From Bugula neritina (taxonomy: Eukaryota > Animalia > Bryozoa): a DNA stretch of 64,000 nt. Made by a program: the position numbers and the translations under genes. Below, piece after piece: positions 13,901-40,900 of the stretch. Under the pieces are notes generated by a model, which searched no databases, was not told the origin of the DNA, and saw only the letters and a list, made by a program, of their open reading frames with translations. The stretch spans positions 34,868,080-34,932,079 of the forward strand of contig OZ037765.1 in NCBI GenBank assembly GCA_964035545.1. Reading direction: 5' to 3'. Numbering within the stretch: position 1 is the stretch's first letter; every line of letters begins with the position of its first letter.

Positions 13901-16900
13901 TACAATAAAATCCACATTACTATACTCTCATACTGGTTAGAAGTTATGACAAGTTAGTTCAGAGTGATCAGTAATAATTTTTGCAGAAGCTTATTTCCAA
14001 CAAAAATTAGAGCAGCATGGAACATTTATAAGTTCAGCTTTGAATATAACTTAGTTCAGCATTGAGCATATCTAAGATCATCATTGAACAGAAATAAGAT
14101 CATCATTAAACATATATAATATCACTATTGAGCATAAATAAGATCACCATTGAACATATATAATATCACTATTGAACATAAATAAGATCACTATTAAACA
14201 TATATAATATCACTATTGAGCATAAATAAGATCACTGTTGAAAATATTTAAGCTCACCATTGAACATATATAAGATCACCATTGAACATAACTTGGCTCA
14301 TTGTGATAAATACAAAGAATCAACTTCACAACTCTTTATATCAACATTGATCTAACATACTATTCACTGTGAACAGTACCTGACACTAATTTCTATTCAC
14401 TGCTGGTCAATTTAGGAATCCAAAAAACGAGCTGTTTTAGTTGTCAGCTAATGTTCACTCTAACACTAATATTTCTCTCTGTGAAGTTGAGGTATTTCAA
14501 CATGATTTACTGGCCAGTGGCATACTGTGTATAATCAGTTAGTCAAACTGATTATTATTATTTATGAAGTGGTGGATATTTTGTAGAGAAGTACAGTGTG
14601 TGGTTCAACACATCCAGTATAGATGGGGCTGATGATGAGTGGATGTGGAAAAGTACTACACCCTACACTATAGAAGAGATCAAGAAGAAAAGTAGACATC
14701 ATACAGTTACTCATGTTAGACTGGTGTATGACATTCCTCCAAATATCAACACACTGTTTCCTCATCTCACACATCTGAGGGTATCTGGAGTATACAGGAA
14801 TGCTGCCTGGACCAGGTATGATATTGTGTCCAACACATGCAGTATAAGAGAAGAAAATGAGAAGTTCTTGTCAGTGGTGAAGTTTGAACCCTTACAGTAG
14901 TAAATACCCCCTTATCCACTTTACCAGCAGACTATACTTAAATATTAGGTGAATACACACTACACAGAGTACTCCCACCTATTCATACTGTTAGCTAGTA
15001 TTTAGTGACTATTCATACTGCTAGCTAGTATTTAGTGACTATTCATACTGCTAGCTAGTATTTAGTGACTATTCATACTGCTAGCTAGTATTTAGTATTA
15101 TAGTATAGAATGATACTGTAATATATATAATATCCCATCACCGAATCATCTATCTAGTTCTCAATCTATCATATATTAGTATTTAGGTTATCTTTAGAGT
15201 TATCTTTGTTTTCATATCTGTATGTTATGTTACAGCATATCTTCACTGAAGAATCTTGAGGTATTGGATATATCAGATAATAACTTATCTGACGGTCTAC
15301 CTGACAATATATTCACATCCTTACTATCATTGAGAAGGTTGTACATGGTGAGGTGTAAACTGTCAACTCTACCAAACAGGTGTGTATTATATTATAGTGT
15401 AGAATGATACTGTAATTTAAATAATATCTTATCAGTGACTCAGCAACTGTCTGGATACATAGCAAAGGTTTCTACAATTAACACTCAGGTTGAGGATATT
15501 CTGTTGAGACTAGAGCTAAACTGTCAGGTCAGCGTGTAGCATTTAAGCCATTTTCTATGATAATTTTTTAATTTTGTGTATTCCCCCCCAATTGCATTTT
15601 TGTTGGTTAGAAGAGATAGGATTTCTACTTGATAGCTTACCATGTGTACAGTACTAATTCCTGTGTACTCTGAAGCTAGGATATTTCAGATCAGCTATCA
15701 GATTTACAAATTGTTAGATGCTACAGAATTTGGGGTTTAGAGTTCAGACAATAGTTTGTATACAAACACTGCACCCTACGACCCCAAGCTTTGTGCTGCA
15801 TTCATCAAATCCCATCAGCTTTTATCCCATGCAGTTGGTAGTTGTTGAGTGCTGATTGGCTGATTTGTTCTACTTGTATCACGTGCTGCAAGGCCGAATG
15901 TTTTCTCTTTTACTGGAAGTTCATTTATTCAGTTTAATAATTACAATTATAAACATGAAGGATGGTTTGCCTTCTTCCATCTATAAGTACAACATATAAT
16001 TGGTTGTTGAATGCAAACAAGTCTGACCCTCCTACCTGCCAGGGGCATATTGAAGTGAACCTTTCAACCATTGGTTGGTGAGTAATATCTCTGTGCATAA
16101 CACAGATGTTGCAGGATTTAATTAACTTAGCCACATCTCTACACAGGACTGGCCACCAGAAGTGGTGCTGAGCCCTCACTCTACATTCATGTACCCTCTG
16201 ATGGCCCTTGTGGCACATTTCTAAATATCCTGACTGTAAAGACTAGGGAATATACACTCTGGACTTGTATATCAGCATATTATTATAAGCTGGTAAATAA
16301 TGTAGTACTGTAAAAAGCTGTGTTAGCCCACCTCTCAGACTGCTTCCATTTTTGGTCGTGCAAATTCTATTACTTTTATACTGATAGGGTCTGAGTTTGT
16401 AGTTTTTAGTCTCGTTTCTAATATATATTATCATAGAAGTTAGTAGTCTCTATAATAGAACTTACATATGACTCAATGTCACCATTTGATTCCTCTAGGG
16501 CATAATTTCACAGTATCTCGTCCTCAGACATAACACTTATGTACCAATACGAGATACATTACATCATAATTAAATGTTGTCTATCGGCAAAAATTTTGCA
16601 GTAGCCAATCATAGTACTATAACAGGGCAGTCTGAGTGTAGTATCTCGTTTATCCGCATAATTATAATAGCCCGTAGTTGAAGATGGAGTTGGAAGCTTT
16701 TCAAATACCTCCCGCATATAATAGCATTTATGCTAGTCCTTAAAACTAAATAAACATTATGGTAGACCAATAATCATGAAAGCTCTACTCATTTGTAACT
16801 GGAGGATTTGTAGCACCACAATACTAAATTTCTTGCATTGGAGGTGCTTAGGCTGTGTTGTCATAGTGATATGTACTTATTGGGGCTTGGTATAAAATTA

Positions 16901-19900
16901 AACCTGACAATTATAAGGAGTAAGGTATTATTGCTGTGGTTTCAACTGACCAACTTTGGAGTTATTATCTCGATTCTTTGTCAGGAATGGTTAGATAATT
17001 TCATGCAATAATGAGTTTTGGCTTTATATCATTATAAATAATGAGTTTTGGCTTTATATCATTATAAATATCTACATTGATGGCAGCACTGAGCTAGAAT
17101 TCTAATATCTTTTCAAGCTTATTGGGTGGCAGCTTATCGGCTAAATTTTATGCAGATATTGAATAATGTGGTTTGATAGTTATGCTATATTGTTAGGTTC
17201 ACAAGCATCTTTAAAAAGTTATAATTATTACGTTAACCATAGGTCAAAAAATTACCTAAAGAGAGGGCAGACAACTCCAAAAGATTGTTTTCGCAGAAGC
17301 AAGTAAAATTCAGCTAAACTGAATACTCCAACTGATCAACATTTTCATCTATTAAAATTGAAGAAAAGTTAAATATTATTATACTATTCTAATCATGAAT
17401 AGGCACAAGCTAAAAAGATATTTATTTCAAAAAATATAAAAAGTAAAGTAACACAACAATGTTTGCAAACGCAGACCTAAAAATGTGAATATTCTAGCTT
17501 GAAATTAAGTCTGAAATTCAGACTTTTCTAGGTTGAATTGACTTTAATTGACTCACCAAAAAAAACAATTAATAAAATTATAAAAACAAGCATGTAATGA
17601 AAAATGTAGTTCATTAGCAAAACTGGAGGAAAGCACTTTTTTTTCTAGAAATTGTTCGATTACATAATACATTTTTGTGCAAATGATATTTTTTAATAAA
17701 ATGAAACTGTTGTATTGTTTGGCTAGATGAAGTTTCAAAAGTATTTTTAATATTTTCTCAAATAAAGTAGACATGCACTCCATTTTCACATTTTTTGGCA
17801 AAACATATGATTGGGATTCAGTAGTCAAATCAGTTAAGCTTGACACAAGGAGTTGTCACATCCATCCTAAAGAACAAGACCATCTACAATAACAAACATG
17901 GAAAGTACTTAAAATTACATTTAAGTTTACAATAATCCTTAAAATATATGTTGCCTTCTGCAAATGCTAAATAAAACACGATGTAATGCTATGTTTACTT
18001 AGAATAAATCTTGCTGACTTACAATGAAATTCATTCATTTCAATTTGAAAATTCCTGTCAATAACTTGACTCTATGCTAACAACTAATTGTAATACCAAA
18101 ATCACACTGCTACTTTTAGTTTAGGGAATTTATTTTCATTATTAGTTCAATATTCAGCAGAGGTTTTTCTTTAATGAACAAACAATAGGCATACATGCAG
18201 ATGAAAGATTAGGTCTAGTGGATACTAATTTTGTGCCTAACAAAAAAAAATGAAAGACTGCATGATAAACTAACAACTCTAAAAAATTGCAATTTGAATG
18301 AGGCTCAGGCTTTTAGGTGAGCAAGAGTAACCAGAAGAGCTACTTTAATGGAAGAAATTACTAACTGATTGTGTAGTTGCAGGCTGCATGATGTGTTTTG
18401 ATTGTCACAACCACTTTTGAAAAGGGAAAATCCATTAAATTAAGACTACTGGCAAACAACAGAACGATAAGGAAAAAATACCAAGTAGAAATTCACTTCT
18501 CAAAGCAAACTGTAGTTAATACATTATAGATGCTTAGAAGAAGCAGGCAATAGTGAATGCTATATATAGTGTAGATCAGGATTCTATACAATGACAAGTA
18601 AACTGAAATTCCAGTGCACTTTGAAACTACTTGTAAGAATGGGCTTAGTGCTTTATAGTGCCTTGAAATTTTTTCAAGTCTAATTGGCACCATGCTATTA
18701 GAATTCGCAGAGAGATGACCCTTTAAACTTTCACTTTAAACTTTAATACCTTCACGATTTTGAGTAAGAAATTCAATTTATATAGGTCTGAAATTTCACC
18801 GAGTTGCATAGCAAGCCGCTGGTCAAAATGTTTAGTTTGTGATAACTTAATCAGCTGATTTCAGAATAACAATCATTGGGAATGACATCTTCATGTAGAT
18901 ATAGATATTTATGCTTATAATTATATCGGCTGCCTTCATCAATCATCGATACTATGCTGCCAAATCAACTAATTAATTACAGTTGGAAACTTCAAAGGGC
19001 ATTGAATAGCAATTAAGCAAGTTATACTTTTAATATTACAAAAAGAACTTATGCATCAATATGATTTAAAATATAGGTGGGCACTCCGCTAGTGATATTA
19101 ACTTAAACTGAAACTTTTTTCATGCAGGAAAAGCAAAAACGCATCTCAACAGAAACTTAAAAATGTCCAGCACACTTTATGCTTTGGCAACACGCACACA
19201 ATAACTTCGCACACAATAATTTCGTTTATGGTACAAACCTTTTTGTTGATTGTTTTCCAACATTTTCACTAGAGCAAAGCCGAAAGAAATTTGGAAACTG
19301 CATAATGATGCCAGCCACCGTGGCATCATCTTCTCTGGAAAATTATTGACAAATCATCACCCAAAAACTTCAGCAAAGCCTCCATCAATAGTATGTAATA
19401 CTCTAGGTGAAACTAAAAAGAAAGAGACAATATTTTCGTGTAATTTAACCCATCAATAAACGCATCAATAGTTAGTGTGGCCAAGGTTTAAACCTCATTA
19501 ATTTCATGCTATTTAAGGCTTTTACAACTTAAAAGATGTAATTCATCTGTAAGAGAAATGTTAGGTATATGAAATGAGTAGAAGTGCAAAAGCAAGCAGG
19601 TATTAAGGAAGGACGAGTTAGTAGGTGTACTTTGACTTGCGATAAATCAATGTGATACCAGATGTGAATTTTGAGGTGTGTTTACTCCAATCTCACTGAA
19701 AAGGTAGAAATAGCTCAATTTACGAGACACACAATATTTTATGAAATACTGCACATTCATTAAAACTTTATAAAACTCTAGTGTGAAGGGTGACTCACAC
19801 TTTTAAACCGTAGATGAGCTAAGTTGTAAAAGTTTGATAGGAACCTTTTACTCTATAAATTTATACAATATAAAATACTCTCCACATATTCAACAGCTAC

Positions 19901-22900
19901 AAAGTTTTGTTGAAGATAAACTTCCTCAACAAATATACAGAAAAAAGCTATTTGAAAGCCAAATTTCATTAGCATAATATAAGATTATTTGTGTTTCATC
20001 TTTATAAACAGTGATATAATCATTTAACGGATAACTAATGATTTCACTTTGTTTTTCATTCAATAAAAACTAAGTGTAGTTGGTATTAAAAACAGCTTTC
20101 ATTTCTCACTTTTTTTCTCACCCTAATCTGCGTAGGCAAACAATTGGTTTGTTTCAAACACCACAACAGTAAAGCGTGACAGCATAGCCAGTGGAGAAAA
20201 CAATCATCTATACTGCTGGATCAGTGGCAACTTGCGAGTGTGTCAGAGTAGTGTCTTGTTGTGTGATTCTACAAATAAATTATGAATTTGAATATACTAC
20301 AAAGTTGCAAACATTGTTTTAACAAAACACAGCCTTTATTTGATATTATATGTAAAGCTCAAGTTGGTATAATATATATTAAATAAATTTTAGCTTTCCT
20401 TTTGGATACTCTGAAACAAAATAAAAAAATAAACCAGAATTGGGTAAAGCCATGCAAACTAGAGAGAGAAAGAGAGTGGGAGAGGGGTGGGGGTGGGAGA
20501 GAAAGGTTAGGAGAGAGGATGGAAGAGAGATGGGGTAGAAGAGAGAAAGGGAGAGAGTCAGAGAGATAGTGGAAAAGGGGAAGAGAGAAAGGTTAGGAGA
20601 GAGAGAAGGTGGGAGAGATGGAGAGTGGGAGAGAGAGGGAGAAGGTGGGAGAGGGAGAAGGTGGGAGAGAGGGAGGGTGGGAGAGAGGGAGGGTGGGAGA
20701 GAGGGAGAGAGGTTGAGTGGAAGGTGTGGGAGAAAGAGACAGAGAGAGGAGTGAGAGAGCTTCCAAACTAACACCATTGACTTAAAAAATGTTGATAAAA
20801 ACTGCAGCAAGTCTTTAAAAACGATGCTAGCAAGTTCAAAGCTCACTATAACTTTCAAAATCAATAAAATGTCAAGTTCAAAAAACTCATCTGCGAGCAA
20901 AAAATAGTTACAGAGACAACCAGGTATTGGGCAAGAGCCAGCTAATAGGAGTACCTTTTTAGATAAACTGCATGCAGGCACAGTGAGATAGCATCGGTGA
21001 GTTGTGTCTTCATTTTAATTTCCTAAAAATGAACATAAACAAATGCTAGTAATGAAAGTTTTCAGGGTTATTAAGGGTGCAATTTTATCACTAAACATCA
21101 TAGCAATAGCAAAAATTGCTCAGTACAAATTTAAGAAAAATTTCTTTCATCCATTACATAATACCCGAAATCAAATCCATTTATTCAATTCATCAAGCTG
21201 AAAAACCAAGAATATTCAGAAAGACAGTAAAATCACTTTCTAGTAAAAAACAGCTTTAGATCATAATTGTTGGGTTCAGCTCTTAAGCTAAGACACCGAT
21301 GCACTGAAATACGAAAAAGATCAGCATACTTTTGACTGTCACAAAATTTATTTTACGTGCAACAGACATTTTAAGGTCACCCGCCACCCGCGCAGGACCA
21401 CGTTGGTGAAAGGTGACCAGATATTTTAAGGTCAATCAAAATCAAGCAAAGTTCATCGTCATATTGCTTACTGCTTAATGCTGCAGCTTATTTTTGCTTA
21501 CCAAGTTTCTTTCTGCAGAATAATTGTAGCTAGCTTCTCGATTTGCCATCTTTATTCTAGTCCAGGTTCAAATGACATCTTGATCGTTGCAAATATCCAT
21601 GCAAGCTAAAAAATATTTATCAATCAGTAAAACAACAGAAATACTTACAATGATCCAAATATTACTATTACATTACTATAACATTACACAGTAACACTAT
21701 GTTTATAATTGTAATACGGAAGCATGACTTTGTGGTAGTTTGATATGCTATAGCAAAAGGTAGAAAAATCAACTGAAAAACCGACAGAAATAATCAAGTA
21801 CAATTAACTAAAGCAAATAAACTTACTGAATAGTAAATATTTTACTATACTTAGTGAATTGATTTACTTCCACTAGGTTTACTTTCATGATTAAATGCTT
21901 CTGTCTATTTTCCAGTTTATAGGAATATATTAAAAGTGAAACCAATTATAATTACTATTACCTTATCTAGTTTTGACTATATATTTTTCACAAATATAAA
22001 CATAGTTATATGCATATCCCTATTGTGACTGCAGATACCATTGCGGTAACTGAAATCAAACTTCATTCTACTTCAAGTTTCTAACATTGTCCCAGTTCAA
22101 AGACTAACAAGTGAATAATTATTAACTGTAAAAGGTGCAATAAGTTACTTCATTATTAAATAAGATACAACTGATTCTACCGTATATGATACTATGGTAT
22201 CTGTATTAAATTAAAACATAATTATGAAAATCAAAAGTTGTATTTTGAGCACTTATATTATAGTAATTAAATTAACAGCTTAAAATAGGCACATTAAACC
22301 ATGATTGGAATTTTTATCCATTTATCTTTATAATTATATTTATTCTTTATTCTGAAAGTTGACCCAACACTGGTAACAAAACTAAAAGTAATTGATTAAG
22401 TATGATTTATTCTTACACACTTTACCATTATATTTAGTCTTCCTGACTTTCAGTCTGTCATAATGATTACTACTATATGAAAATGACTTTGACTTAGGAG
22501 TCATAATTATAGTCACAGTGTTGATAAGTCAACAGTGTAGGATTAACACAGCACTAGACTAGTACTACCTCCAGCTTTCAAGTTTATGTTAGAGTATCTC
22601 TAAGACTAAAGAGTAACCCTAATAATGTAAGCAAAGAGCAGTGAGTAATAAGCATGCTATTCAACTTCAAGTTTCACTAGTACTATAACCAATACCACAT
22701 GTATTTTAATAAAATTATGTAGCTGGTGAGTGAACTATAAAATTAAATAGGGATCAAACTTTGAGCAATATTAATAGAAATAATATTAGGACAGAGGTTT
22801 CCAATTATTAGTATGTGAAACCAAAGGGGAATGGATAACTACTATTAGTATTATTACATTTACTTTATATTTAATTTTACCAGTTCGTATTATGATTATC

Positions 22901-25900
22901 TTACTTTGAATTGTAAAGTATAATAATTATAATATTCATAGTAGTATATTTATATTAGTAATTAATATGTATATTAGTAAAAACATTTGTTTTAAGTTGC
23001 TTGTTTATTAAATTATTCTAAATCCTAATAACGATAATCTTAATATTAGTGATAATCATTATGCTCATCACTGTCCCCAAGTGCTATCAGTATGACCATC
23101 GCAATGTGAACCTAGACGTGAATGTAAAAAGGCACTGCAAAACAGAACACGGGATGGAGGCAGATATCCATACCATAATACAAATATCGATATTGAATTT
23201 GATAATCATAATTATTATACAAATATAATGATAATAACTACAATGATCAAAAATAAATAATACCAAAGAGTTTTCGAATTACTATTCATAAAATCAAATA
23301 TCATATTTATAAAGATATAATCATATCTATTATTAAATTTAAGTCAATTATACTAATAGCAATAGTAATATAAATAGAAAAAAGAATCATTGACCAGGAG
23401 TAGGTGCAAAATAAAAGTCAATTTTAAGACAAAGAGTAAGAAAAATACTAAATCGATATTTAAAATTACTTATTTTTAATCTTAGTCACTAACAGTCAGT
23501 TTTAGTTTAATTTTTACTACTAAGTCTTTAATTTCAAGTTCATTTTGACAATAAACTTGAAGACTTTAACTAAGAATATGTATAATTCAAAATTCCAAAC
23601 TGGTACAAGTAAAAGTTGCTACTGAAGCTTTGTAATACTATTTTAAATTATTGGTATGATAGCATTATATTTTGATTCATAGCAATATTGATAGTGACAA
23701 TTTCAAACATACCCATACCATTACTGTTACAGTTTAAGTTACTATTGCCATTGTGATTGCCGGTAATGAGTAAATATAACTTAAATTTATATGACTATTA
23801 CTATTACTATTAGTATTACTATCACTTTCAGTACCGGTCTAGTATCAGTATCACCTTAATTCAAAATCAATGTATAATTTATCAAATTACTTTTATATTA
23901 TCATTCATCAATAATATGTCTACCACTATGATATTATCATGATATTGATTTTTAATTTAAACATAATAAAATCATAGGTATAATCATAATGATAATCATA
24001 ATCATAATGCTTAATTTTACTTTTAGTTCAGGTTCAATGATTCAAGAGTAAGTGAAAGTTACTATAACTATTGCCATTGTGATTGCTAGAAATAAGTAAA
24101 TATAATTTAAATTTATATGACTATTATTATTACCAACACTCAGACTTACTCGGACTCACTCTGTCTCTAACTCTAAGTCTGAGTTTCACTCCACCAGAGT
24201 GAGAGTGACACTGAATTACTATAACTATTAGTATTAGTATTAGCAAAATATATCAACCTTATGATTATCTTATTAGTTATTACAATATGTTCGGCATTGA
24301 TATTGAACTAAAAATATTAATATTTATTACTATATTACAATCACAATGACAATCACAATGCCAATATGAATATCAATATGAATAAGATCAAAGACAAATG
24401 ATTCCAAGCAGTTTGAGTTGAAGGTAAGTTATAAGTTGAAGTAGTACGTAAGTGGTAATTGATACTGATACTATCATTGATAGGTCTATACTCCATACCA
24501 ATGAACTCAATAATATTACCTATATATTACCATAAATTATATTACTATTAGTATTACCTATAATTAAAATATATTATTTCTTTTCCAGCTCAGTGCTTTA
24601 TACCCTCTACTTAGTCTAATGCCGCGCGCATGACGAGAATGTGAGGTAAAGGTCACTCACAGCTAAAATCGCCAAGGATCTGTAATCACTAGGAGTAGTA
24701 GTTCTAGTACTAGTAGTCGTACTACCAGTAATCTGGCTTCGCTATGGCACTACGAATTGAATGTTGACAAGACGCATGCATGTTTGCTGTTAGTAAACTA
24801 ATTTTTACTGAATTTTAATCATGCTTAGCTGCAACCTATTTTCTAATGAAATGATATATTCAATAATAATATAATAAATATAATAATAATAATTATCATT
24901 ATAATATTTTATCATTTAATTTTATAACTTTTACTTTTAGTTTTAGTATTTTGGTTTTACATCAAAATTTACATCAAAATTTACATCATTATGATTATCA
25001 TTATGATTACAAAATGAAAATAATTATCAATAATCGTTACCTTTTAATTTATGATTATAATTAATGTTAGAAAAACCACAATTACAATCATAATGATAAT
25101 GGCATAATGCCAATGATAATCACAATCGTAACACTAATAATAATAGTAATAGTCAAACTCAAGGATTGAGCCAATGATTCAGATTGTCTCAATTTAATTA
25201 AATAAATTTCAGCCTTGGGTTTAACTTTACAGTTCACAATTTTATTTTACATTACGACTGAGAGTCACAGTAAGACTAAGAAAAAGAGTAAGTCATACCT
25301 TTCTTGCAGTTATTTTCAAAGTTTGTAGTTGTACTAGTACAGTAGTAGACCTAGTAGTAGTACTAGTAGTAGTAGTAGTAACAGTACTATTAGTAGTAGT
25401 AGTAGTACTAGTACTAGTAGCAGTACAAGTACTAGTTGTAGTACTAGTATCAGTGGTAGTAGTAATAGGACTCAATCTTAGATGTAAGTTTAATGAAATA
25501 CGAATAATAATAGTATAAGTATAACTTTTACATATTTAGTTTTACTATAAGTGTAAATATAATGAGTAATAGTAAAACTCAAAGTATATACATTAACTCA
25601 GTTTAGCATTAATGATAAAATATAATAATTATAATAAAGTAATATGATCACCATTGCGATTATAATTAAAATTCTTAGTAACACTTTTATGATACTTAGT
25701 TTAATTTATTAATATTAAACATTAGTTTGGCTACCACAAATAACTAATAAGTGCTACTATAGCTAACTGTAAAGATAAGTATAAATTTAACTATAACATA
25801 GACTATCAGCAATAATAATATATCATATTGGTATTAAACTATATATGAATAATGCAAATCATAGATCATACCTCATGATAATTATTCCTAATGATCTTAC

Positions 25901-28900
25901 TTTTTATATGCTGATGCTAATAAGTAGTAATTTTAAATTTGATAACTCATGAATGATGAATAAGATAACAAGAATAATACTGGACCTAGTAATACTATTA
26001 GTCCTACTACTAGAATTTTATTACCTTATATGTGTAATACGCTTCTTTTAGTAATACTGCTGGTCAAAGTTAGTGTTAATCATATTTATAGTTAAATGTT
26101 GAAGGAATAAATTAGTTCATAACATAAACATTGCACTATGTGAATATGAAATTTAATATGAATATCCCAATTACACTTGCTGTTGCTCTTTAGAGACTAG
26201 AGTTATAACTTATAACTATGATATAATAATGAATACCATTATTTTAACTAATCATATTACTCAGCTAATGTTAATGATAACTGTAAGTCTAAAAACCATT
26301 ACGGTTATAGGTATCACTGACTAATATTATTAATAATATAATCATTCGTTTTATACTTGTACCTATATTTATATTTATACTTATACCTATTTTTATACTT
26401 ATGATCATATCTATACTTTCACGTATGCTTGTACATTTTACTCATAGTATCAGGGTGGCAATCGAAAAGTCATAATCGATATGCTAATCTAATAATAGAA
26501 CCAACTGCACTAATATAGTTGTATATTATTATTATTGTTGATTGACCATAGTTTTTTAGCTGGTGTAACCTTTTACCATTGGCCTAGTTATACTAGGCTG
26601 AAATGGATAGAACTTTCCTCAGGATGTGAGCTTATCCTGATCCTAGTAAGGGTGTCTGCTGAATTAATGAGCATTTGTTTTCAGCTACTCCAAGTAGTGT
26701 CAGCCAGTCTACAATCTTGTATAAAGCTCCAAAGGCTCCAGTTACAACGGGATGACTTTTTTGATGTTTTCCAAAGGCGGGTTTATTCTAGTGCTAAATT
26801 CTGATATTTTCCTAACTTTTCGAATTTTTTTTCTTTTACTCTGTAGTTAACAGGGACTGTGATATCAATTATCGTTGTTTCAGCATTATGCTTGTCAACT
26901 ACTAATATATCGGGTCTCCTAACTTTGATGACTACGTCAGTGTGTATGTTAAAATCTTACAAGGTTTTTACACTATCATTTTCCACTACTGATTCTGCTT
27001 GATGGCCGTACCAATTCTAACTTTTCTGAAACCCACGAAGTTCACACAACTACTATTGAAATTATCAATGCCAAAAGGTTGTGTTTTTTCTTATATTCTC
27101 CTTCTGCTACCTTCTCAAACTCACTCAATACGTGCATCGAAGTTTTGTCTCTTGCGTTACACATTCCTCACTTCTTGCTACCCTGTTCTCTCATCATAGC
27201 CACTTTATAATTTCTAGTAGTGAATAGTTGATCTTGCGCAGCTGTCAGCAGTCCTTCTGTTTTCCTTTTCCTTCCCTTCTGCTAAAATACAGCCTGCCTA
27301 CATCTGCTCTCGGATAGGGTGCACGGTTTGTTGTCATTAGCTTCCTTGTCTCCCAGTCCATATTTTTTAGCTCATGAAACAGTTCAGTCAAGTATTCTAG
27401 CTGTGTAATGCACTGCTGTTACTGCCCATGTGTTTATTGCTTTGATTGTGTTCTCACCATTCAGTTTTGAATCCAGAACTTTTCTTATTTGTTTGTAGTA
27501 CTCCTTGATCTTATTTTTCATTTCATATATTTGTATTCTATCAATCTCAAGAACTCCTAGATATTTATACGGCTTCTCACCCAGATCTTTGATTACCTGT
27601 TCATCAGGCAAACTGATTCCTGTATCCTTGATTTTCTTTCCCTTTCTCATAACCAGTGTGGCACATTTTTTAATCCAAATTTCATTTCTATATTCCTTGT
27701 GAAGATCCCGGCAGTGTTTACCAAAGCTTCCAGTTCTGACTTTGATTTCCTATTTACCTTCAGGTCATCCACATATAGGAGATGGTTTGTTATCTGTCTC
27801 GTCGAAATTTGCATCATTGAGCCGCTTCTGTCATGCGAATCGGTAGTTGGAGAAAAGGGATAGAGATAAAGAGTCTCCTTGGAAAATTCTTAGTTTGATC
27901 TTTATTTCTCCTATCTTTTCTTCCAGGTATTTCAGTTGTGTTTTCCAGGTTTCATGCTTTTTCTTATCAACCTTATGACATTAATTGCTATTCCAGTTGT
28001 TTGCATCGTTTCTAAGATCTAATTTCCTTGTCTTTACATATGCTCCAATTTGTTGCTAACTTTATTTAGTCATTCTGCATTGGTATTATTTTTAGTTGGC
28101 TGACCCCATATATTTTATCAGAATGCTTTTGATTTCCTTGTCAGGTGCCTCTTTAGATGTACATTCATTTTCTCGTAATTCTTGATAAAAGCGCTTATCA
28201 TTGTAAACATTGTGTTCTGATTATATTGATCAACTCATTCTGTATATATGTTTATCTTCTGGCTTACAGCTCTCAGGTTTTGCTTCAGTTTTTCAATCAC
28301 TACACCACACTCTTTGTTCTTTATCCTATATTTTTCTTCAACCATTCTTCTCAATGAATCATTGTAAGCTCTACTTTTTCACTCTGCTATTTTACTTAAG
28401 TCTGATCTAATTTCTTTTTATTTCTTCTGCAGTCGTATTTTCCATACTTGTACATTGTCAGTTTTTCTTTTTCCTTTTTGTTACACACTTGTTCTGTTAC
28501 TATTTTTCGCACAAGCCATGGTGGTGTTATTAAGCTCAATGGTATTAATAATCTCAACACAGTTTAGCACATCATTAATCTGTTTTACTGCCTGTAGTAA
28601 TTTGACCCTCTCAATGTGCCTAAGGGCTCTTAGTGTTGGTCGATCATTAGATAGTTTGTTATGCTCATTTATAATTTTTCTACTAACACTTTTTCCACCT
28701 CTGAACTAGGTTTTCTTAAAATTCTCATGGCTGATTTATATGCTATCTCATGTTGTACTATAACATCCTCTATTTGCAAATTTAGCTCTTCATTATCTTC
28801 TTCACCAATTGATGTGCCTAGTTCTTGCAAGGTTCCTTCTTCAATCTTATGGAGTTCTTCTTCCATAAAATGCTTGTGTTTCTTCATAGTTCTTGCTTAA

Positions 28901-31900
28901 TCCGCTAGTCTCTATTCGCTGATGTTAAACTCTCCTCTGTTTTCCAGCGTTTGCACATTCTTTTTAAATAATTCTTTGATCCGGGTCTACAGAGCTCATA
29001 CATTGTTTTTCTATAACCTCTCAATTTGGGTGTACTTTTGAAGCAGCATTTCATGACAACTTTGTTGTCTTCTCTTGAGTATCTTCTTTTAGTTGTGCCA
29101 TTAACGGGTTGACGGCCGTAGGTTGCCTGGCCCTCCACATACCCACTGCCAGACGAGACATGCCATGTTTAGTTAGACATACCATTAACGTCGTTGGCTT
29201 TATTAGTTCTATTTTAATGGATCATATTATTATTTTTAATTATTATTATTATCACTATCAGTAGCAAATAAATAATTTTATATTTGTTATTAGTTACTAC
29301 TTATAGAAATTGAGTGCCACAGCTTGAGGGTTATAAAGTCAGTCTTAGTCAATGTAATGGGGATGCTGATACTGACATTTGGCTTCGAGCTCATAGTTAA
29401 ATTGCTAACAACTATACCTAAGGATAACAGGAGTATTAAAATGTTAATTTATAAGGATTATAACCTTAGAGTGGAGATATTATTCTCAATTTATTTAGTT
29501 TTTACTTTACTAACTTTTATTTTATTCATCAACCTTACTGTCTATTTAAATAGCAAACTAAAGAATAATTATGAAGGCCTTTGAATTGAAGTACTTTTCT
29601 GTAGCTGATTAGATTTCAAGTATTAAAATAACATACTAAGACAGAATACCATTATATGAGCTAGATTAATAAAGTAAAGAAGATTTCTTTGTTAATCAAA
29701 ATATAGGTGTCACATATGCCTATTTTTAAGATTATGTTCTTATATGTGCTGTCTTTTTATTAGTTTCAAAGTGCTACATTTTGAGGGTGGCCTACATCAA
29801 TATGACTTCCCTGTAATTGCTTGTCAACTATAAGAGTTAGACCTATAAACTGTCTCATTTTCAAATTATCTTTACTTTTCTAATTGATGTTAACATGACT
29901 ATTCCTATTAGTATTTTGGTGTTTACCATTAGTAATGTTTGAACTAACATCAATATCATTGTTAATTTGTCTAATTATTCAAATTTTAATATTCATCATT
30001 TGTGAACAGTAATAAAATTTTGTCTTTCTTAAATTAATGTGATGCTAGATTAGCTACTCTAGCAAGTGTGTATTGTGCAATGAGTACTAATGCCATATTT
30101 TTGCACTTCTTGTTCTATATAATTTAGATTTAAGGTAACAATTCCTAAAGCTATCACATATTGCTGCTATCAGTTATAAAGATGTCACTGATCCAAACAT
30201 TGAAAACCAGCTGAGTGCATGCAAGGTTGAAAACTTATTTTCTCTGGTTAGGTAAGTAGAAAGGTATTTGTTGTAATTTACAACTATTTTGTTTTCAACA
30301 TCCTTGATGTTCATCTCTAAAAGATAAGTAGCACAAAATGGTACCTGTTTTACTTAGCAGAAGAAATTATTGTCAAAGCTCTATTACTACATTTTAAATT
30401 GTATGACACTCTTTTGACTACATTTGATTTCATATCTCAAATAATTATATTTCTGACTCATGAAACTGTAACCACACACTTGAGAACAAAATAAATAATG
30501 ATATGGAAGCTTTCTTTAACTTTGTCAATTTAGTCAACAGCCAATGACTGAAAACACGTTTTGTACACTATTGATTGCCTCTCTAATTCCGCTATAAGGC
30601 AGAAACTTTAATCTCAAAATTTAAGACACTGGCAATTCTTCCCAATAATACGTTGTTCAAAACAAATATTTTTTGCCAAGTAATATAGTATTTAATTATA
30701 TTTTTTAGTCAAAGAAATTTGTTTGGTTTCTTGTGTCATCTTGAATAGCTTGTTATTCATTATCTTTTTCTTCGTGTTATGACTATGAGTGTATATAACC
30801 TTTGCTGACAGGTTTTTCCCCCATCACTATATGTTTCTCTGTTTACTCTCTAACATTTTTATTTCCGTTCATTTTTTAGAGTTTACTAAAATGACATGGG
30901 TGTGCTTTGTTGTGGCTCCTAATTGAGCGCATCCGTTGAGATTATTGGAAGTTTTGTTGAAACTGAGCTGAGGCCTCTTACTCCTAAAGGCAAGAATTTG
31001 AGTCATCTTAGCTACTTGTAGCATATCAACATCGAACAGCACCATTCCGCTACTCTAAGCTTAAGGTTTTGGCTGCATTAGATCAACAGGTAAGTTTAAT
31101 AGTTTGTATTTCATACACTATTTCATGATGTCTGTTCAGCATTTACTTGGTAGCACACATTTATAGATTTTGCATTCTTTTAGTTTTTTGCAGTACAACT
31201 TTTCTACGCAACTATTACACTGTTGTTGCTGTTAATTGTAGTTTATTCTGCTTGACCATGCAATTATTGAATTATGTTGCAAAGGTGATTGAGTCCTTTT
31301 ATTTAATTTAGTACACACTGGAAATCTGCAGTTTTTAGCCATTTTTACAATTTAGCTGCTAATGAACAATGCTTTTTGCTTAAAATTAGTGAGACATCAA
31401 GAAATACACCTAAATAATCAAGGTTCTTCTTAATTTTGCATGATTTCTCATGTTTTTTCCTATTTATTCATTTCATTTGGATTGCCTACTGTTACAAACT
31501 AACCGTGGCGATCCCCAGTCAGAAGTTGCTGTAATTAGAAATAGCATAGGAAATCAAAGAAAATTAAAAAGAGCCTTGATTATTTAGGTGTATTTATTGA
31601 TAGTTATTTATTTATAGTTTCGGGCCAAAACTCATGTTCATTAGCAAAAACTTGAGATCTTCAGTATGTACTAACTTAAATAAAATGAACCAATTGCAGT
31701 AAATTTCTGCATTTTCTAATACTTCTTAAATTTACACCTAAAATAGTGCTGTCTTAAGAAAATGACACTAGCTGCTGTTTTCATGTATGTGCCCCAATTG
31801 TATATAATGCTGTTGATTTGTTTAGTGCTTTTTCTATTTGTTTGTTATATAACTTTTCTTTTATGGTTGTTGCCAGCACCTAAAGCATTATTCATTAGTG

Positions 31901-34900
31901 TCAATTAATTTCTACTCACAGTTTTACTGTTACATAGTTTATAAAGCCCTTGTGTCAACTTTTCTAGATATCCTGGTTAAAATTGTTCCACTTGATGAAT
32001 GGCATAGGGCATATGCAATAGCAAAACAGTTGCAGGCTGTTTTGGAAAAAAAATTGTGCATATAACCTTTATTTTATACATGTTATTTAGGCTTTGGTAG
32101 AACTGTTGGAGAGCCTTCCTCTTGAATAAAGCTACTCAACTTCCCGGATTCTACTTTATTGACAATAACCCACTACCTACAAAACGCCTTGAAATTTAGC
32201 TAATAAATTATGTATTTTGTGATTTTTTTTTAAATTTACAATGTTATGTATAAATTACAATCAGTTTATATATATATACATGTCTTTTACTACTTAGTAT
32301 TACAGTGTAAAAAGCATTTCAGGGTTAACAATTTAAATAATTGGCCCTAACAGTATTTATGTATAATACAGATTTGCAGATGCTTTAAATGAACCCAAAA
32401 AGCTGATGTTGTTAAACAGTGTACAAAATAGTCACCTCATATCAGCCAGACATGCTTAGTCATTACCTAGCATTAAATCATATTATGAATGCAGTCAAGT
32501 TTTGATATGCATCCCTATTATTGATAGTTTGTGAACCAGCAATTAAATATCAAGAAGCAATATTACTAACCAATGTGCTGGTTAAAGAGTTTCAAGTTGT
32601 AGTTATAGTATCAAACTATTATAATGGCATAAAAACTATCAGTTAAAACATCTTATTAATATTTACTACAGGAATACATATTATAGGTGTGCTAAAAATC
32701 TGGTAGAAGCATCAATTATTTTAGATGTTTTGGATTTAGTATCTCTGTACTATAATGTAATATACAGAACATCAGATGCTGTCTCCACAGTGCATTGATG
32801 GCACTAATGAATATTAATACATGCAGGCAGTGTTGGTAATGATTTATTGAAATAGGAGTTTAAAAACTGTTTAAACAACAATGAAAAGCCTGAGATTAGT
32901 CCAAGGAGAGGGGTATTTCAAGCTAGCAGATGAGCAATATAGATGCGAAAGTCTTGCCTAAAAATCATTATTGTTATATCTAGTCATTAATTTCTTGCAA
33001 TAGATCTATTTCACTATTGAGAAGAACAAAATTAGCTAGTAAACACTGTAATAGAGTCAAGGCACTTTGGCAGTGCTAGTTTAAAATAAACCTGGGATAG
33101 TCGAATAGCAGAAGTACTTGTTGATGCATAATATAATTATGTACAGCTTAAGATTTTGCAATACTGTGTTTTCAGTGAGATATTAATTTCAATAGCTACA
33201 TTAAAATAATGTACAATTCTAGCAAGTGATGCAAAATCTTCTAAGATGCTATGACTGTAGCAGTTTGCTACTAGTCTCAAGTAACAAACCAAATAGCCTT
33301 TCTTTGTGCCATCATCCAAATGCCAAACAAATAACTCATTCACTCTGTAACAACATGGTGGTCTCCCAAGTAGATTGTTAGACATTTCAGGCATTAATAA
33401 CCAAAGGCTTTTCACTTTGGCATTATTGTATAGTTACCCAGCTAAATAAATAATGTATTCATGGTATTGTAATTGCCAGCCATGCATTTATCTGTGAATG
33501 CAGCTAAGTAGTTAATACGGCCATATATTTATGTACTATGTAGCAATGCCTAATGTAGCTATCAAGCTTCTACTTATACTCATTTTACTGATGCTTTACT
33601 TCTGATTGCATGATTACAAACATATCAGTTCAAACAAAATTATTTTAGATAGGAATAAATATAATGCTCCTAGCAAATGTTGTAAAACTATTTTCCAAAA
33701 ACATATACTTTGCAAACAAACTTTTCAGAAAGTTATAATGCATTTATCATATTATTGTTTCATTTAAAAGTTATAATGATAGAATATTATAATTAAAACA
33801 CACTCAAATTTTTAGATTCTTGTAATATTGTTAAACAAGAGTTAACAGTAAGATTGGCTGTAGAGTAGAATGTGTAGCTGTTTGTACTAAAGCTAACAAG
33901 TAACTGGCATTAAAAAGAGTTGTAGATAAAAAGTAACAGAATAACAACTGGCTTGTATATTGGTAGTGCAAAAAGCTGTATATAACAGTTTAAACAAATA
34001 CCCATTAGAATAAGTGGTAACCCAGTACATAAAATGTGGTATGTCATAATACATCTTTGTGGTGTATTGACTAGGCTAGATCAACACATAGCACTATGTA
34101 ATTGCTTTAGTATTTACAATTAGTTTGTGGTCTGGTGGGACTTGTTGATAGCCATTGTCTTTATTAACATAACAGTTTCATAAAATTAGCAGTTTTCCTT
34201 ATTCACCTAGTTAATTTTTAAGATTTATGTACAATATTTACATATTTGGATATAAAAAATATCTTCAACCAGTGAATATCAAAATAATGATTAAAGACAT
34301 ATTTTATGTCATATTTTTGTGGCAATCTAAATAATAAGCTGGTCTAAATTGTACTTGTGCAAACAGAACCAGCTCATGAATATATGTTGTCTTTTTTTAA
34401 CTTGACAGTTAATCTAATATGGATGTGTATTTTATACTTGCTTTTGTGTTTAAGGTGATAGAATTGCACTGGTAAAGTTAATAAACATTGCTTGTTTGGC
34501 ATGCTTTTGCGTGGCATTGCATATTATGCTAAACTAATGGCCAGTTTTGCAGTAGCTTCACCATAACCTTCAAAAGAATGCAAATATCATCTAATTATTG
34601 TAAGCTTTTTAAGTTAATTTGTCTAGCTATAAACAACAATTTCAATTTCACGATATACATAGCTCTATAATTCTGAAAAACTGCTAGGTAGAGTGGAAAT
34701 TAAACACGATCTATTCATTGCTAAAGTATTACAGCTATGAATAATATATATGTGATTACCTGAGTGATATCACAATCTCCACTTGCTAAGTTAGTTTAAA
34801 TACAGGAAAAAAAATTAATCTGGCGAAAGATTATATATGAGAAGCTGTTTTTGTAATAATTTCCTGCTCTAGGGTGATTTAAAAGAATTGTTTTAAAGCA

Positions 34901-37900
34901 AAACTTTTGCATACATGAGTTGAATAAAATCATTGAGAGTTTTATGAAGGTCTATTTGTGTATAGGTAGCCCTATGTCACAACTCAAGTTTTTAGATTTT
35001 ATGCAATTTGTGGTGCAAAGTTGCAAATAAAAACCTTATTTTAATAATACTTAGACATATGCAAGCAATAAAGATAATGAAAAAAATGCTATAGTTGCTA
35101 ATTAGCTAATATTACTTGCATATGATGCAAATATTTGTATGCATGCATGTTTAGTTTGTTAGCATTGGTTAGATATAATTGAATATATAGATTTGATGTG
35201 GAGATTGAAGAAAATCAATATGTTGTGTTCTATATACAACAACAGTTTTTACATTGGTTTGTTAATTACTTCATAAATCATTTATTACTTCATGCAATAT
35301 TTGTTCCTGCAACTTTGCAGAGTGGCAAAATGCATTTCAAAGACATATATTAAGTGATTTTAATTATACTAGAATTTTCAAACTAAGAATTTTTGTGGAG
35401 TTTTCTTCTTCCTAAGACATATGTGGCAATTGAACACATAATAAGTTGTGGGCTACAACTCCTTTATACAACCTTGCAAGAAATTATGCAGCTATTAATT
35501 AAATAGAAAAGGAATTATTGAATTTATTTATTCAACATTATTAGTATTTTATAAATATTTGTTGCATTTAATTAATGAGCATAAAATTTGTTTTACAAAT
35601 ACTGTAATTAACAGCATGGTAAAAATATATTATATATACTGGTATATATTTTGTATTGTATTAGATTTAGGCTACATTGCAAGACATTTATAATTAAAAT
35701 GAGTTAATGGCTAAGTTTAAATATCTTCGACTTATAGATTACATTTTTATGTGCTATAAAAATTTAACTCGTTTGTTACGACATTTCTCCCTGCATAAAA
35801 GCAAAACTTACTGCAAGAAATCCTTAGCTAGAAAGATAAATAATAATTTACTTCAATTACATCAAAAGCTAATATCAGCCAGCATTCTATAAATAATGGT
35901 AATTTACCTAGTGTAATTTTTCTTAAACTAGCTAAGCTTGCTTGGTACTTTAATAAGTTTATTGGCATAGTGTATTATTTTATACTTATATATTTTTAAG
36001 ACTTTAAGGAAAATGATGTTTTAGCTTCGTTATTCCTAATGCAAGCCTTATAAATTTACAATATATACTAAAATATTATATTTGTAATCAGAAAGAAAAC
36101 AAATTACTTTCATAAACTTATAATTATTGCATTCTGTTATTGTTAATGCTAGAATAACAAATTGAACACGGCATATGCTTCGCTAACCAGATGCTTTTAA
36201 ACGGATTAAAAATAATTTGTCAATTTCTAATTATGAGGAACAAACTCCTCGATAGTTTCTACATTTGCGCATGATTTTATCAAGATAGGCTTGTTTTTGT
36301 GTCAACCTGTAGCCAGTGCAACTATACTTTATGTAACGAGTAAAACAGACTCATTTCAAAGTACACAGTCTAAAGGGTAGGAATTACTACAAAGAAAAGT
36401 GCCGGTTAAAAGTTAATTATAATTGGAAATAAGGTGAGATATCAGTCAGAAATTAAAAAGTGTCAACTAAAAAGGTGTATTTTTATTTCTTTTTGGCTTA
36501 ATGAAAATGTTTTTTGAGGAAGAAGTACGAGAAACATCTAGGAGGGGTTCATATCCACCACTGGCGACTACCTGTTTATTGATGAAGAACTATCCAATGA
36601 TAGTACAGTATTATGGTCTTTTGCCTTATAATTGGCTTTGATTTTTTTATGTCTAATTACGAGATACTAAACAGATGCAAAGTATGTTGTGCATAGGCAG
36701 TTTTTTTATGTCTCTAAACAACATTCTAGGAAAATATATACTGGATTCCTCACACTGCTTGCAATGTGGGTAGGCCTACTCAGTGTCTCAGCTCTGAACA
36801 TGTCTTTGCCATTTCTTTGCCTTTATCAGTGTTCTCCTCTCCCTAGATAATATCTCTTGGTTCTCACTGTAAATATATATCTCTGTTTCTTGAGCTCACT
36901 CTAGCACTCAATACCAGCCATATGAAACTCAGACAGATTAGAATGTTGCTGTCCTCACCATGTAACAGATATTTCATACCTGTATGTTACGTTACAGTAT
37001 GTCTTCACTGAAGAATCTTGAGGTATTGAATATATCATGGAATAACCTATCTGAAGATCTACCTGACAATATATTCACATCATTACTATCATTGAGAAAG
37101 TTGCACATGTGGGACTGTGAACTGTCAACTCTACCAAACAGGTGTGTATTATATTATAGTGTAGAATGATACTGTAATATATATATATAATATCTCATCA
37201 GTAACTCAGCAACTGTCTGCATACATAGCAAAGGTTTCTACAGTTACACTCAGGTTGAGGATAGTCTGTTGAGACTAGAGCTAAGCTGTCAGCGTGTCAG
37301 CATTGTTCATGAGATTTTTTAATTTTGTGTATTTTCCGCCTGCTTTTAGCTGTCAGTCATCAATGAAAGTGAATTGCATTTTTGTTGGTTAGAAGGGATA
37401 GGATTTCTACTTGATAGCTTACCATGTGTACAGTACTAATTCCTGTGTACTCTGAAGATAGGATATTTCAGATCAGCTATCAGAGTTACAAATTGTTAGA
37501 TGTTACAGAATTTGGGGTTTAGAGTTCAGACAATAGTTTGTATACAAACACTGCACCCACGACCCCAGGCTTTGTGCTGCATTCATCAATTCCCATCAGA
37601 TTTTATCCCATGCAGTTGGTGGTTGTTGAGTGCTGATTGGCTGATTTGTTCCACTTGTATCACGTGCTGCAAGCCCGAATGTTTTCTCTTTCACTGGAAG
37701 TTCATCTATTCAGTTTTAAAAGTTACAATTATAATTATGAAGGGTGGTTTGCTTTCTTCCATCTATAAGTACAACATATTGTTGTTGAATGCAAACAAGT
37801 CTGACCCTCCTACCTGTCAGGGACTTGAAGTGAATCTTTCAACCATTGGCTGGTGAGTAATATCTCTGTGCATAACACAGATATTGCAGGATTTAATTAA

Positions 37901-40900
37901 CTTAGCCATATCTCTACACAGGGCTGGCCACCAGAAGTGGTGCTGAGCCCTCACTCTACATTCATGCACCCTCTAATGGCCCTGATAGCACATTTCTAAA
38001 TATCCTGACTGTAAAGACTAGGGAATATACACCCTGGACTTGTACATTAGCATATTATAAGCTAGTAAATAATGTAGGACTGTATAAAGCTGTGTTAGCC
38101 CACCTATCAAACTGCAACCATTTTTTGGTCGTGCAAATTCTATTACTTTTATACTGATAGGGTCTGAGTTGGTAGTTTTTAGTCTCGTTTCTTATATTTA
38201 TTATCATAGAGGTTAGTAGTCTTTATGATAGAACTTACATATGACTCAATGTCACCATTTGATTCCTCACACTGCATGTAATGTGGGTAGGCTTACTCAG
38301 TGTCTCAGCTATGAACATGTCTTTGCCATTTCTTTGCCTTTATCAGTGTCCTCCTCTCCCTAGATAATATCTCTTGGTTCTCACTGTGAATATATACCTC
38401 TGTTTCTTGAGCTCACTCTAGCACTCAATACCAACCATATGAAACTCAGGCAGATTAGAATGTTGCTGTCCTCACCATGTAACAGATATTTCATACCTGT
38501 ATGTTATGTTACAGCATGTCTTCACTGGAGAATCTTGAGGTATTGGTAATATCAGGGAATTACCTATCTAAAGGTCTACCTGACAATATATTCACACCCT
38601 TACTATCATTGAGAGAGTTGAACATGACGCACTGTGGACTGTCAACTCTACCAAACAGGTGTGTATTATATTATAGTGTAGAATGATACTGTAATATATA
38701 TATATATAATATCTCATCAGTAACTCAGCAACTGTCTGTATACATAGCAAAGGTTTCTACAGTTACACTCAAGTTGAGGATATTCTGTTGAGACTTAAGC
38801 TAAGCTGTTAGTAATTTCTATGACATCACAGCCGCCATAAGGCTTTGGTTTACTGGTCATAAAATAATTTAAGCTTTCGTTAGTTTCTGTATTTGAATTT
38901 TTTAAAACTTAGCTCAAAGTTTGGGTATCTAATAAATTTTATCTAGCAAAAACAGAGGCAGAATAAGTGGTAGTACGTGGAATTATCATTGGACGTCAAC
39001 ACTGACTCAACCATGTTCTTTTACACTTTCATTCATCTGGTAGAATTGAAAGCACAATTGTTTTTTTTGTTCAAGGCAAGACATCTTTGTACAGGAAGGA
39101 GTAGTTTTTTAGTCAATTCCATGGAAGAGTAGTGATGTGCACATTGGATAAAGTTATGTTAGCAGATTTAACTGAATACTGGTATTCATTTTCACCCTTA
39201 CTATTGCAAGTTATGTAGATAATACCAAATCTAATTCTAATTAGTTGAGTATTAGATACTACCCAGCTGCAGGCTAGGATAGCTATACAATAACTATTTG
39301 CAGTGAACAGTAATATATATCATTTGGTATAAACAGAAATGATTATTAAGATATGATTATTAGATTGTGTGAACAATGCATAGAATACTGTGATATCTAG
39401 TGACAACATTTACCAGATGACAACTAAATATATATTTCTATATCAACAAACCCTGCCTTTGTTTGAACTCTCTATTATTTGTGATGTTTGCCAAAGCAGT
39501 TCATTCAAAGGTCAAGGACACATTCACCGGCTTTCCATGTACCGATCTCAGGTCGATCTCAGCGAGATCGATCCATGGAAAGACGCCAAAGATCGATCTC
39601 CGTCGATCTGAGCTGGTCGGTCTGTGGAGCTCGAACTCAGATCGATCTCATGTCAATAAGACCATGGAAAGACGCCAGATCGATCCGAAAAGTAGAAAAA
39701 GACTGTGCGCTACAATGTTGTCTGCTAATAAAAATGATAACTTATTGATAATTACTAAGCAAAGTATTAAATAATTATGATAGCCACCTTTTCAAATGCT
39801 AAAACTTTGACTTTCAATACAATGATTAAGAAAACGCAATTATATGCAGTAGAAGGTAAAAAAAATGGGAGAATTTAAATTGAATTTAATTCACTATTAA
39901 AACTTAGTTTCATTGGCTATTTTCTTTATAATTTCAAGCCTAACAGTCTTGTTAGTTTATTAATAATCTGCAAGACAGCCATTAATTTTATATAAGCTGT
40001 CAAGCTAAAAAATTAAAATTAATTATTTTAAATTGGCCAAATCACCATACACTGAAAGCTTTGCTGCGTAAAGTTTATAGCTGAAATTAAATTTTAGACT
40101 AGGACCATCTTGTTTTCAACAGTAGTAGTTTTAATCACTCAAATAGGTGAACAAATTATACTTTTAAAGTATTCTTCACTTAAGAGGAGGCAACTTCGCG
40201 AGATCGATCTGACACTCTCATGGAAAAACGATCGATCTGAGCACATCTCTCAGATCGATCTTAGCGAGATCGATCTGAGATCGGTACATGGAAAGCCCGT
40301 GATTGTTTAACTATAATATATAGCCATTTTATAACTTTCTATATTACCCATTATTGTAATGAATATATTTGCAATGTCAACTTCTAGACATTATCACTCA
40401 ACAAAGATGGTGCTCTTATTTCTGCATAAAATCAAATTTTTGATATAAAAGCTATCATGTGATAATAAAGATGCTTCAACTTGTACTGACAGTGTATAGT
40501 GTTCTGTTCACTAGCATACAGAGTCTACAGAAGTTGGAGGAACTGGACATATCATATAATAACTTCACGAGTTTACCATCTCCTGTGTGCACACTCAGTA
40601 GTCTGCAGAAACTGGATATATCCTCCAATAAGTCCCTGACATCCTTAGATCCTGAGATACTACAGCTAACTCAACTTCGTACACTGTATGTTGGATATTG
40701 CTCTGCTCTCACATCTCCTCCAATAGAAGTATGTGAGAGAGGAGTAGATGCTGTGAGACAATACTACACAGACTTGGCTAAAGGTGCTGGTAGAAGTCTT
40801 CCATTTGCTACTATAGCTGTACTGGGTAATACGATGGCTGGGAAGACCAGTCTAATCAGAACATTACAGAATGCTGACAGAAAGAGAGTTCTGACCAACA

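Follow-up and report, generated by a model that had tools for sequence, protein, structure and literature searches.

Evidence for diversifying selection at predicted concave-face codons of two-repeat LRR cassette exons in a putative LRR-Roc-COR-caspase gene family of Bugula neritina

The variable lymphocyte receptor (VLR) genes of lamprey and hagfish are assembled somatically from promoterless, intron-less cassettes, which are copied into an incomplete germline gene. Vertebrate ROCO genes are, to our knowledge, single-copy, under no known diversifying selection and without a caspase, and we know of essentially none of the immune and fusion/rejection receptors of colonial bryozoans. In the brown algae Ectocarpus and Saccharina, the LRR-ROCO genes encode one leucine-rich repeat (LRR) per 72-nt exon between phase-2 introns (PMC11378527), and exon shuffling, alternative splicing, positive selection on the concave face and clustered families have been described for them (PMC3341825, Zambounis et al. 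2012; PMC11378527, Teng et al. 2024). Here, we report on a 64,000-nt stretch of the genome of the bryozoan Bugula neritina (contig OZ037765.1, positions 34,868,080 to 34,932,079; hereafter the window), which contains three 144-nt exons, A, B and C, with two LRRs each. We consider it probable that these exons are germline cassettes of one member of a tandemly expanded LRR-Roc-COR-caspase gene family, in which diversifying selection on eight codons at x positions of the LRR consensus builds a repertoire. No paper on a ROCO or LRR-Roc-COR-caspase cassette family in bryozoans or other animals was found in our literature collection, which is incomplete.

Anatomy and divergence of the three cassettes

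A direct-repeat search combined with alignments delimited three copies of one unit (15210-15423, 36972-37185 and 38489-38702), each of which contains one 144-nt exon that is bordered by ttacag on the acceptor side and gtgtgt on the donor side. The single open frame of A, B and C comprises 1 nt, 47 codons and 2 nt, which equals intron phase 2 on both sides, and the split codon, AG/C or AG/T, always encodes serine. Every cassette carries two repeat cores, L7xxL10xI12xxN15xL17 (N-type) followed by L32xxL35xM37xxC40xL42 (C-type), i.e. two repeats of the typical LRR form (LxxLxLxxN/CxL, about 24 residues) per 47-codon exon. Single exons scored 26.5-27.6 bits with Pfam LRR_1 (cut-off 20.6) and at or just below the cut-offs with LRR_8 and LRR_4; matches of the cassette peptide in the PDB include FLS2, VLR-A and repebodies. 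A structural mapping on the fold of a single 47-residue cassette (63-row alignment) was discarded, because the resulting model was helical and meaningless (pLDDT 63, pTM 0.38).

The three exons have diverged more than the introns that adjoin them. B and C differ at 17 of 144 exon positions (11.8%) versus 16 of 405 intron positions (4.0%, p = 0.0016), A and C at 21 of 144 (14.6%) versus 12 of 173 (6.9%, p = 0.04), and A and B at 18 of 144 (12.5%) versus 62 of 1115 (5.6%, p = 0.003), the downstream intron of A and the B unit accounting for 60 mismatches in 1089 aligned bases. Upstream, the homology of A to B and C begins just 26 nt before the exon (15210); the upstream share of B and C amounts to 254 nt.

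At the codon level, B and C are distinguished by 12 replacement and 0 silent differences, besides one silent change in the split codon, while the corresponding numbers are 12 and 1 for A and C and 10 and 2 for A and B. Eight of the 12 replacements between B and C fall on codons 11, 14, 16, 34, 36, 38, 39 and 41, all of which are x positions of the LRR cores. The residues found there in A, B and C, respectively, are D/N/V (codon 11), D/W/G (14), N/N/Y (16), R/K/E (34), Y/H/N (36), VR/WD/TH (38-39) and K/E/G (41).

An earlier note, which had been made from the letters of the window, had described the three exons with their phase 2-2 borders, had counted the replacement and silent changes for B-C and A-C and had listed the residues at the variable x positions. 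Coordinates, length, splice sites and phase could all be reproduced, the recount gave identical numbers and the residue sets were correct. The concentration of the changes at x positions of LxxLxLxxN/CxL holds in the window as well as across the sampled family described below. The claim of nearly identical flanks needs to be narrowed: the introns are indeed 4.0-6.9% diverged and thus below the exons, but the upstream homology of A spans only those 26 nt.

Diversifying selection across the cassette family

A first look across the 216-Mb genome yielded 186 candidates for the 144-nt exon. A 38-nt core (codons 21-33) was found 140 times genome-wide at up to 3 mismatches, including 76 perfect occurrences, whereas the reversed control gave 0; the copies are located on contigs C1 (32.57-34.97 Mb), C5 and C3. 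From these about 140 core copies we sampled 81 exons in 294 kb of the cluster, and the following results refer to this sample. The sampled arrays carry 2-9 cassettes, and 79 of the 81 exons are exactly 144 nt long, open and bounded by AG and GT. Amino-acid entropy is about zero at scaffold positions and highest at codons 14 (15 residues), 39 (14) and 38 (12), followed by 36, 41, 11, 16 and 34. These eight codons mostly use N, E, K, D, Y, G, S, R, W and H, and 76 distinct eight-residue combinations occur among 77 distinct exons.

Within the core itself (15297-15334 in the window), the synonymous sites are identical as well in the 76 perfect copies, while the introns are unalignable. This identity could be due to conversion, to a young family or to a constraint at the RNA or DNA level.

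For the selection tests, the 12 x positions of both LRR cores were fixed beforehand as the test set, and the other 35 codons represent the scaffold. We compared 23 non-overlapping nearest-neighbour pairs, which were chosen by the divergence of their 150-nt intron flanks (≤10%), so that this test is independent of any tree. Summed over the 23 pairs, nonsynonymous divergence at the x positions, dN(x), was 0.20, synonymous divergence (dS) 0.0275 and intron divergence (K) 0.038, corresponding to dN(x)/dS = 7.4 and dN(x)/K = 5.3 (Fisher p = 3e-23 vs synonymous sites and 5e-39 vs introns). The scaffold showed a dN/dS of 1.04. In a test of individual codons, for which the intron rate of the respective pair served as the reference, codons 11, 14, 36, 38, 39 and 41 passed the Bonferroni correction. 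Tree-based estimates of omega (dN/dS) for 75 distinct exons (IQ-TREE, GY+F3X4) were 2.7 for the whole exon (twice the log-likelihood difference to omega = 1, 2dlnL, ~58), 9.8 at the x codons (2dlnL ~86) and 1.33 at the remaining codons (2dlnL ~3, not significant). Stop codons at the eight hypervariable codons numbered 0, compared to 12.9 expected under free base assortment.

The excess of replacement changes at the x codons noted earlier is supported, with dN at these codons well above dS and intron divergence. A dN/dS of one or less with changes spread evenly over the scaffold, the outcome named beforehand as contrary to the proposal, was not seen in the sampled exons.

Host gene, transcripts and neighbouring elements

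The exons and duplicated units assigned to the locus are compiled in Table 1.

Table 1 Cassette exons, duplicated units and further exons of the LRR-Roc-COR-caspase locus in the window.
Feature	Position	Strand	Evidence
Candidate exon 1, coding part: ATG, MGQRKS, poly-Pro run, phase-1 end at GT donor	7937..7985	+	paralog conservation
Candidate exon 2, 229 nt: N-terminal region ahead of cassettes, enters phase 1, leaves phase 2	14587..14815	+	paralog conservation, open frame, AG/GT
Duplicated unit of A and its downstream intron, homologous to 36972-38268	15210..16495	+	blastn, 89% over 1324 columns
Cassette exon A: 144 nt, two LRRs, phase 2-2	15236..15379	+	alignment, splice sites, Pfam LRR_1/LRR_8/LRR_4
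Tandem duplication with B and C, period 1517 nt	36744..38811	+	36744-37292 vs 38261-38811, 93.6%
Cassette exon B: 144 nt, two LRRs, phase 2-2	36998..37141	+	alignment, splice sites, Pfam
Cassette exon C: 144 nt, two LRRs, phase 2-2	38515..38658	+	alignment, splice sites, Pfam
Large exon: cassette-like LRR start, more LRRs, Roc GTPase, putative COR	40515..42517	+	Pfam, PDB; 3' end is candidate GT donor 42518
Caspase-domain exons, pieces 42994-43434 and 43602-43832	42994..43832	+	tblastn with Watersipora PF00656 proteins; borders approximate
C-terminal caspase exons, pieces 49072-49161 and 50066-50182	49072..50182	+	tblastn with Watersipora PF00656 proteins

Two segments upstream of the cassettes are conserved among paralogs: in 4-5 paralogous arrays, a segment 93-96% identical to 7872-7954 precedes the first cassette by 1-1.5 kb, and at 12 sampled loci, a segment 86-92% identical to 14553-14827 precedes it by 250-500 nt. 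The MGQRKS sequence and proline run at 7937 resemble an N-myristoylation-like start, which would put the receptor at the membrane.

Downstream of the cassettes, the open reading frame (ORF) 40444-42540 codes for LRRs, a Roc GTPase and a weak COR-A match. The acceptor AG of the large exon is located at 40513-40514, and the exon start is cassette-like (C followed by IQSLQKLEELDIS); Pfam LRR_4 and LRR_8 were matched in this exon, too. The Roc domain of ROCO proteins was recognized by PF08477 with 31 bits (cut-off 27) and by the P-loop GNTMAGKTS, and PDB matches across the LRRs and Roc comprise the Chlorobium Roco protein and LRRK1/2. The COR-A profile PF16095 reached 17.3 bits, which is below its cut-off of 35.3; many homologs with 34-42% identity carry a precomputed PF16095 assignment.

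The named protein relatives are bryozoan, from Watersipora and Bugula. The catalytic His (THG) and Cys (EVCSG) of a C14 caspase were recovered in tblastn alignments with Watersipora proteins annotated as 'MFHAS1 homolog', namely with their caspase part. The pentapeptide EVCSG in 43602-43832 corresponds to QACSG in the Watersipora relative, i.e. the Gln-Ala of QACxG is replaced. The middle of the caspase domain, about 86 residues (query 948-1033), was not located by tblastn between 43832 and 49072. A strongly G-skewed block (44000-50000) occupies the caspase intron, and a 701-aa minus-strand ORF there matches only DUF5866.

Because the phases are all compatible and the 5' exons are not repeated between A and B, the most economical model would be a single gene in which exons 1 and 2 are followed by A, then, after a 21.6-kb intron, by B and C, and finally by the LRR-Roc-COR exon and the caspase exons. 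Since the 21.6-kb intron showed no homology to other sampled arrays, no second 5'-exon copy and no Pfam-bearing ORF, a separate 5' end for B and C is disfavoured.

Contigs from runs labelled RNA-Seq or guessed to be RNA were placed on 36900-42600. They cover B, C and the large exon; in X7 and X9, the majority of intron bins contain no contigs, with light cover beside the exons in X7. A GT..AG joint connects a cassette 3' end (37141) to 40515, and the loose contig ends right ahead of exon B match what the 3' end of a further cassette would look like. Spliced cassette-cassette and cassette-large-exon junctions exist in these contigs. Skipping of exon C as an explanation for the joint from 37141 to 40515 was rejected, because the contigs contain 20-25 nt on the cassette side and this 3' end is shared by all cassettes. 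A Logan contig matching a paralog was likewise rejected as cDNA, since it retains the intron and is thus genomic.

Several further elements were observed in the window. The intron just ahead of the LRR-Roc-COR exon contains an element of about 790 bp (39524-40312) with 54-nt terminal inverted repeats, which resembles a miniature inverted-repeat transposable element (MITE); further copies are found at 8768-9559 and 9757-10547. Contigs of X1 skip from 39521 to 40306, which suggests an empty MITE site in an allele or paralog. The intron ahead of exon A contains 3.9 copies of a 30-nt minisatellite (14979-15096), which has expanded to about 1 kb in introns of paralogous arrays (C1:33890816-33892043), so that array intron length would largely be set by its copy number. 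Upstream of exon 2, 10711-14486 is 91-95% identical, in reverse orientation, to C1:33863671-33871603 and appears to be a segmental duplicate of the 5' flank of another family member about 1 Mb away. The caspase tail of the upstream neighbour occupies 59-2118, and retroelement ORFs follow downstream of the gene, with RVT_1 as well as RNase H and an integrase zinc domain (52061-53995, 55914-57269).

Origin and role of the variation, and comparison with known systems

With regard to the formation of the repertoire, each cassette would insert two LRRs in frame, and new cassettes would arise from tandem duplication of exon-plus-intron units, as in the case of B and C, while cassettes are also gained and lost and probably exchanged between arrays. 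Two sister arrays, C1:34228931-34233706 and C1:34295951-34301214, which are 67 kb apart and differ by 0.7-4% in their introns, contain 8 and 9 cassettes, respectively; the difference of one 478-nt unit appears to be a very recent in-frame gain or loss of a cassette. After duplication, diversifying selection would act on the eight codons at the predicted concave face of the LRRs, with hardly any change in the scaffold or even at synonymous sites, so that nearly every cassette would offer its own binding-face residues. The earlier note had pictured cassettes that can be duplicated and swapped in frame. Duplication is borne out by the B-C tandem copy and by the sister arrays, but exchange is only probable, exon and intron genealogies being often discordant.

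Several points weigh against the interpretation of A, B and C as germline cassettes under diversifying selection. The tree-based omega ignores recombination and relies on a tree from the same 141 nt, both of which inflate the test, and the intron-nearest pairs may include exons that were partly overwritten by conversion from paralogs, in which case some substitutions are imported and not new. The placement of the x codons on the concave face is a prediction from the LRR consensus. The contigs are short, and their joints cannot be assigned to this gene or to its paralogs because of the few nucleotides on the cassette side and the common 3' end, and the splice from A to B over 21.6 kb is a prediction of the gene model. 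Finally, this gene has just three cassettes, compared to up to nine or more in its neighbours.

The explanation that survives best besides new mutation under selection is that most cassette differences were imported by short exon-centred conversion or exchange from the about 140 paralogs, with selection only preventing homogenisation of the x codons. To this we assign somewhat less than an even chance, and it would provide a mechanism for the same pattern rather than deny it. Among the 43 exons with a close intron neighbour, 20 have a closer exon elsewhere with unrelated introns (e.g. C1:34392666), although the few variable sites and limited residue sets imply that chance convergence can mimic such discordance. 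In pairs with an intron divergence below 5%, 35 of 135 differing x codons show 2-3-base changes versus 3 of 108 other codons, and the proportion of synonymous differences (pS) levels off at 0.04-0.076 while the introns diverge past alignment. The two LRR halves vary independently in their hypervariable residues (Mantel r = 0.04), which also fits import; a PHI-type recombination test on the 144 nt, however, gave no clean signal because the hypervariable sites are clustered, and its sign flipped with window size. Taken together, the discordant genealogies, the multi-base x codons, the pS plateau and the 76 perfect 38-nt cores on three contigs indicate exon-centred conversion or exchange combined with selection for different x codons. 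Rapid structural turnover of introns (30-nt minisatellites, MITEs) in a young family represents an alternative to conversion. Selection for diversity is needed even if the differences were imported, since conversion alone could not hold the x codons apart and at the same time make bases at a distance of 3-30 nt uniform.

Judged by its evolutionary pattern and its domain logic, this large family, which diversifies fast, may provide receptors for immunity or self-recognition. The proteins may act as intracellular sensors, whose LRR surface would bind variable pathogen or non-self ligands, and ligand binding would be relayed via the Roc-COR GTP switch to the fused caspase. A non-immune role of the diversifying surface, directed at fast-evolving endogenous partners, symbionts, transposon products or developmental cell death in the colony, seems unlikely to us, although run X1 is labelled as a symbiont metagenome, a heritable bacterial symbiont is carried by a bryozoan named among the protein relatives and caspases are also active in polypide turnover; in all studied cases (VLR, TLR, plant NLR, brown-algal ROCO), large tandem families with omega above one on the concave LRR face are tied to non-self recognition. 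More speculative still, and improbable in our judgement, is a germline library of about 140 interchangeable cassettes that is reshuffled between genes by exon-centred conversion, possibly varied by skipping in the mRNA, and used for fusion/rejection or anticipatory-like immunity. If this were true, the set of LRR-Roc-COR-caspase sensors on display would differ between bryozoan genotypes, or even between cell types, and the family would amount to the long-sought system by which a colonial lophotrochozoan achieves allorecognition or anticipatory-like immunity.

Neutral drift, either of unconstrained surface residues at the x positions or of decaying pseudo-exons, is very improbable: the scaffold dN/dS of about 1 among close pairs and a gene with few cassettes and a 21.6-kb intron are compatible with it, but dN(x) at 5-7 times both dS and intron divergence is beyond neutrality, and length, frame and splice sites are kept in 79 of 81 exons whose hypervariable codons lack the expected stops. 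Targeted mutagenesis at fixed codons (templated adenine mutagenesis as in diversity-generating retroelements, or a deaminase hotspot) has the least to recommend it, because, although Asn (AAY) is the commonest state at four hypervariable codons and reverse-transcriptase ORFs lie inside the window, other AAT/AAC Asn codons (6, 15, 24, 47) are nearly invariant, so that the variation is specific to codon positions and not to bases or confined to adenines of a template-matched region, it is fixed in the germline between paralogs, and the ORFs are part of ordinary retroelements, which are located over 9 kb downstream.

On the reading that we prefer, diversifying selection on germline cassettes, a family of about 140 or more two-LRR cassettes, whose excess of dN over dS at the predicted binding face is among the clearest, makes a concrete and testable candidate for the immune and fusion/rejection receptors of bryozoans, and in the gene described here, a GTP switch and a caspase would follow the cassettes within a single polypeptide. 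The conserved scaffold and synonymous sites beside hypervariable codons also offer a natural case for the interplay of conversion and selection.

In comparison with the VLR genes, the bryozoan cassettes likewise combine a uniform LRR scaffold with hypervariable concave positions, and among the PDB chains matched by their peptide are those of VLRs and repebodies. However, they are ordinary AG/GT-bounded exons, spliced in frame within complete germline genes, which argues against a VLR-type system, and there is no indication of a somatic process. Tandem clusters, birth and death, unequal crossing-over and omega above one at xxLxLxx are textbook features of the LRRs of plant NLRs and receptor-like proteins and of animal TLRs, and the bryozoan family resembles them in this respect; in contrast to them, its switch would be Roc-COR instead of NB-ARC, NACHT or TIR, the caspase effector is present in cis and each exon encodes two repeats. 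A likeness to MFHAS1/MASL1 and to LRRK-type ROCO proteins is apparent from the Watersipora relatives, which are annotated as MFHAS1 homologs, and from the matches of LRR-Roc to the Roco protein of Chlorobium tepidum and to LRRK1/2.

The closest known parallel is the LRR-ROCO genes of brown algae, and the comparison drawn in the earlier note is apt, as both share LRRs joined to Roc, followed by a putative COR domain in the bryozoan gene, repeated phase-2 exons, shuffling, gene clusters and positive selection on the concave face. The bryozoan exon differs in its 144 nt with two LRRs, exactly twice the 72 nt of the algal exon, in its animal host and in the C-terminal caspase, and alternative splicing of cassettes is reported in brown algae. 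An independent origin of the cassette design in the two lineages seems likely, and the family described here would thus be an animal counterpart, probably convergent, of the cassette ROCO system proposed for brown algae.

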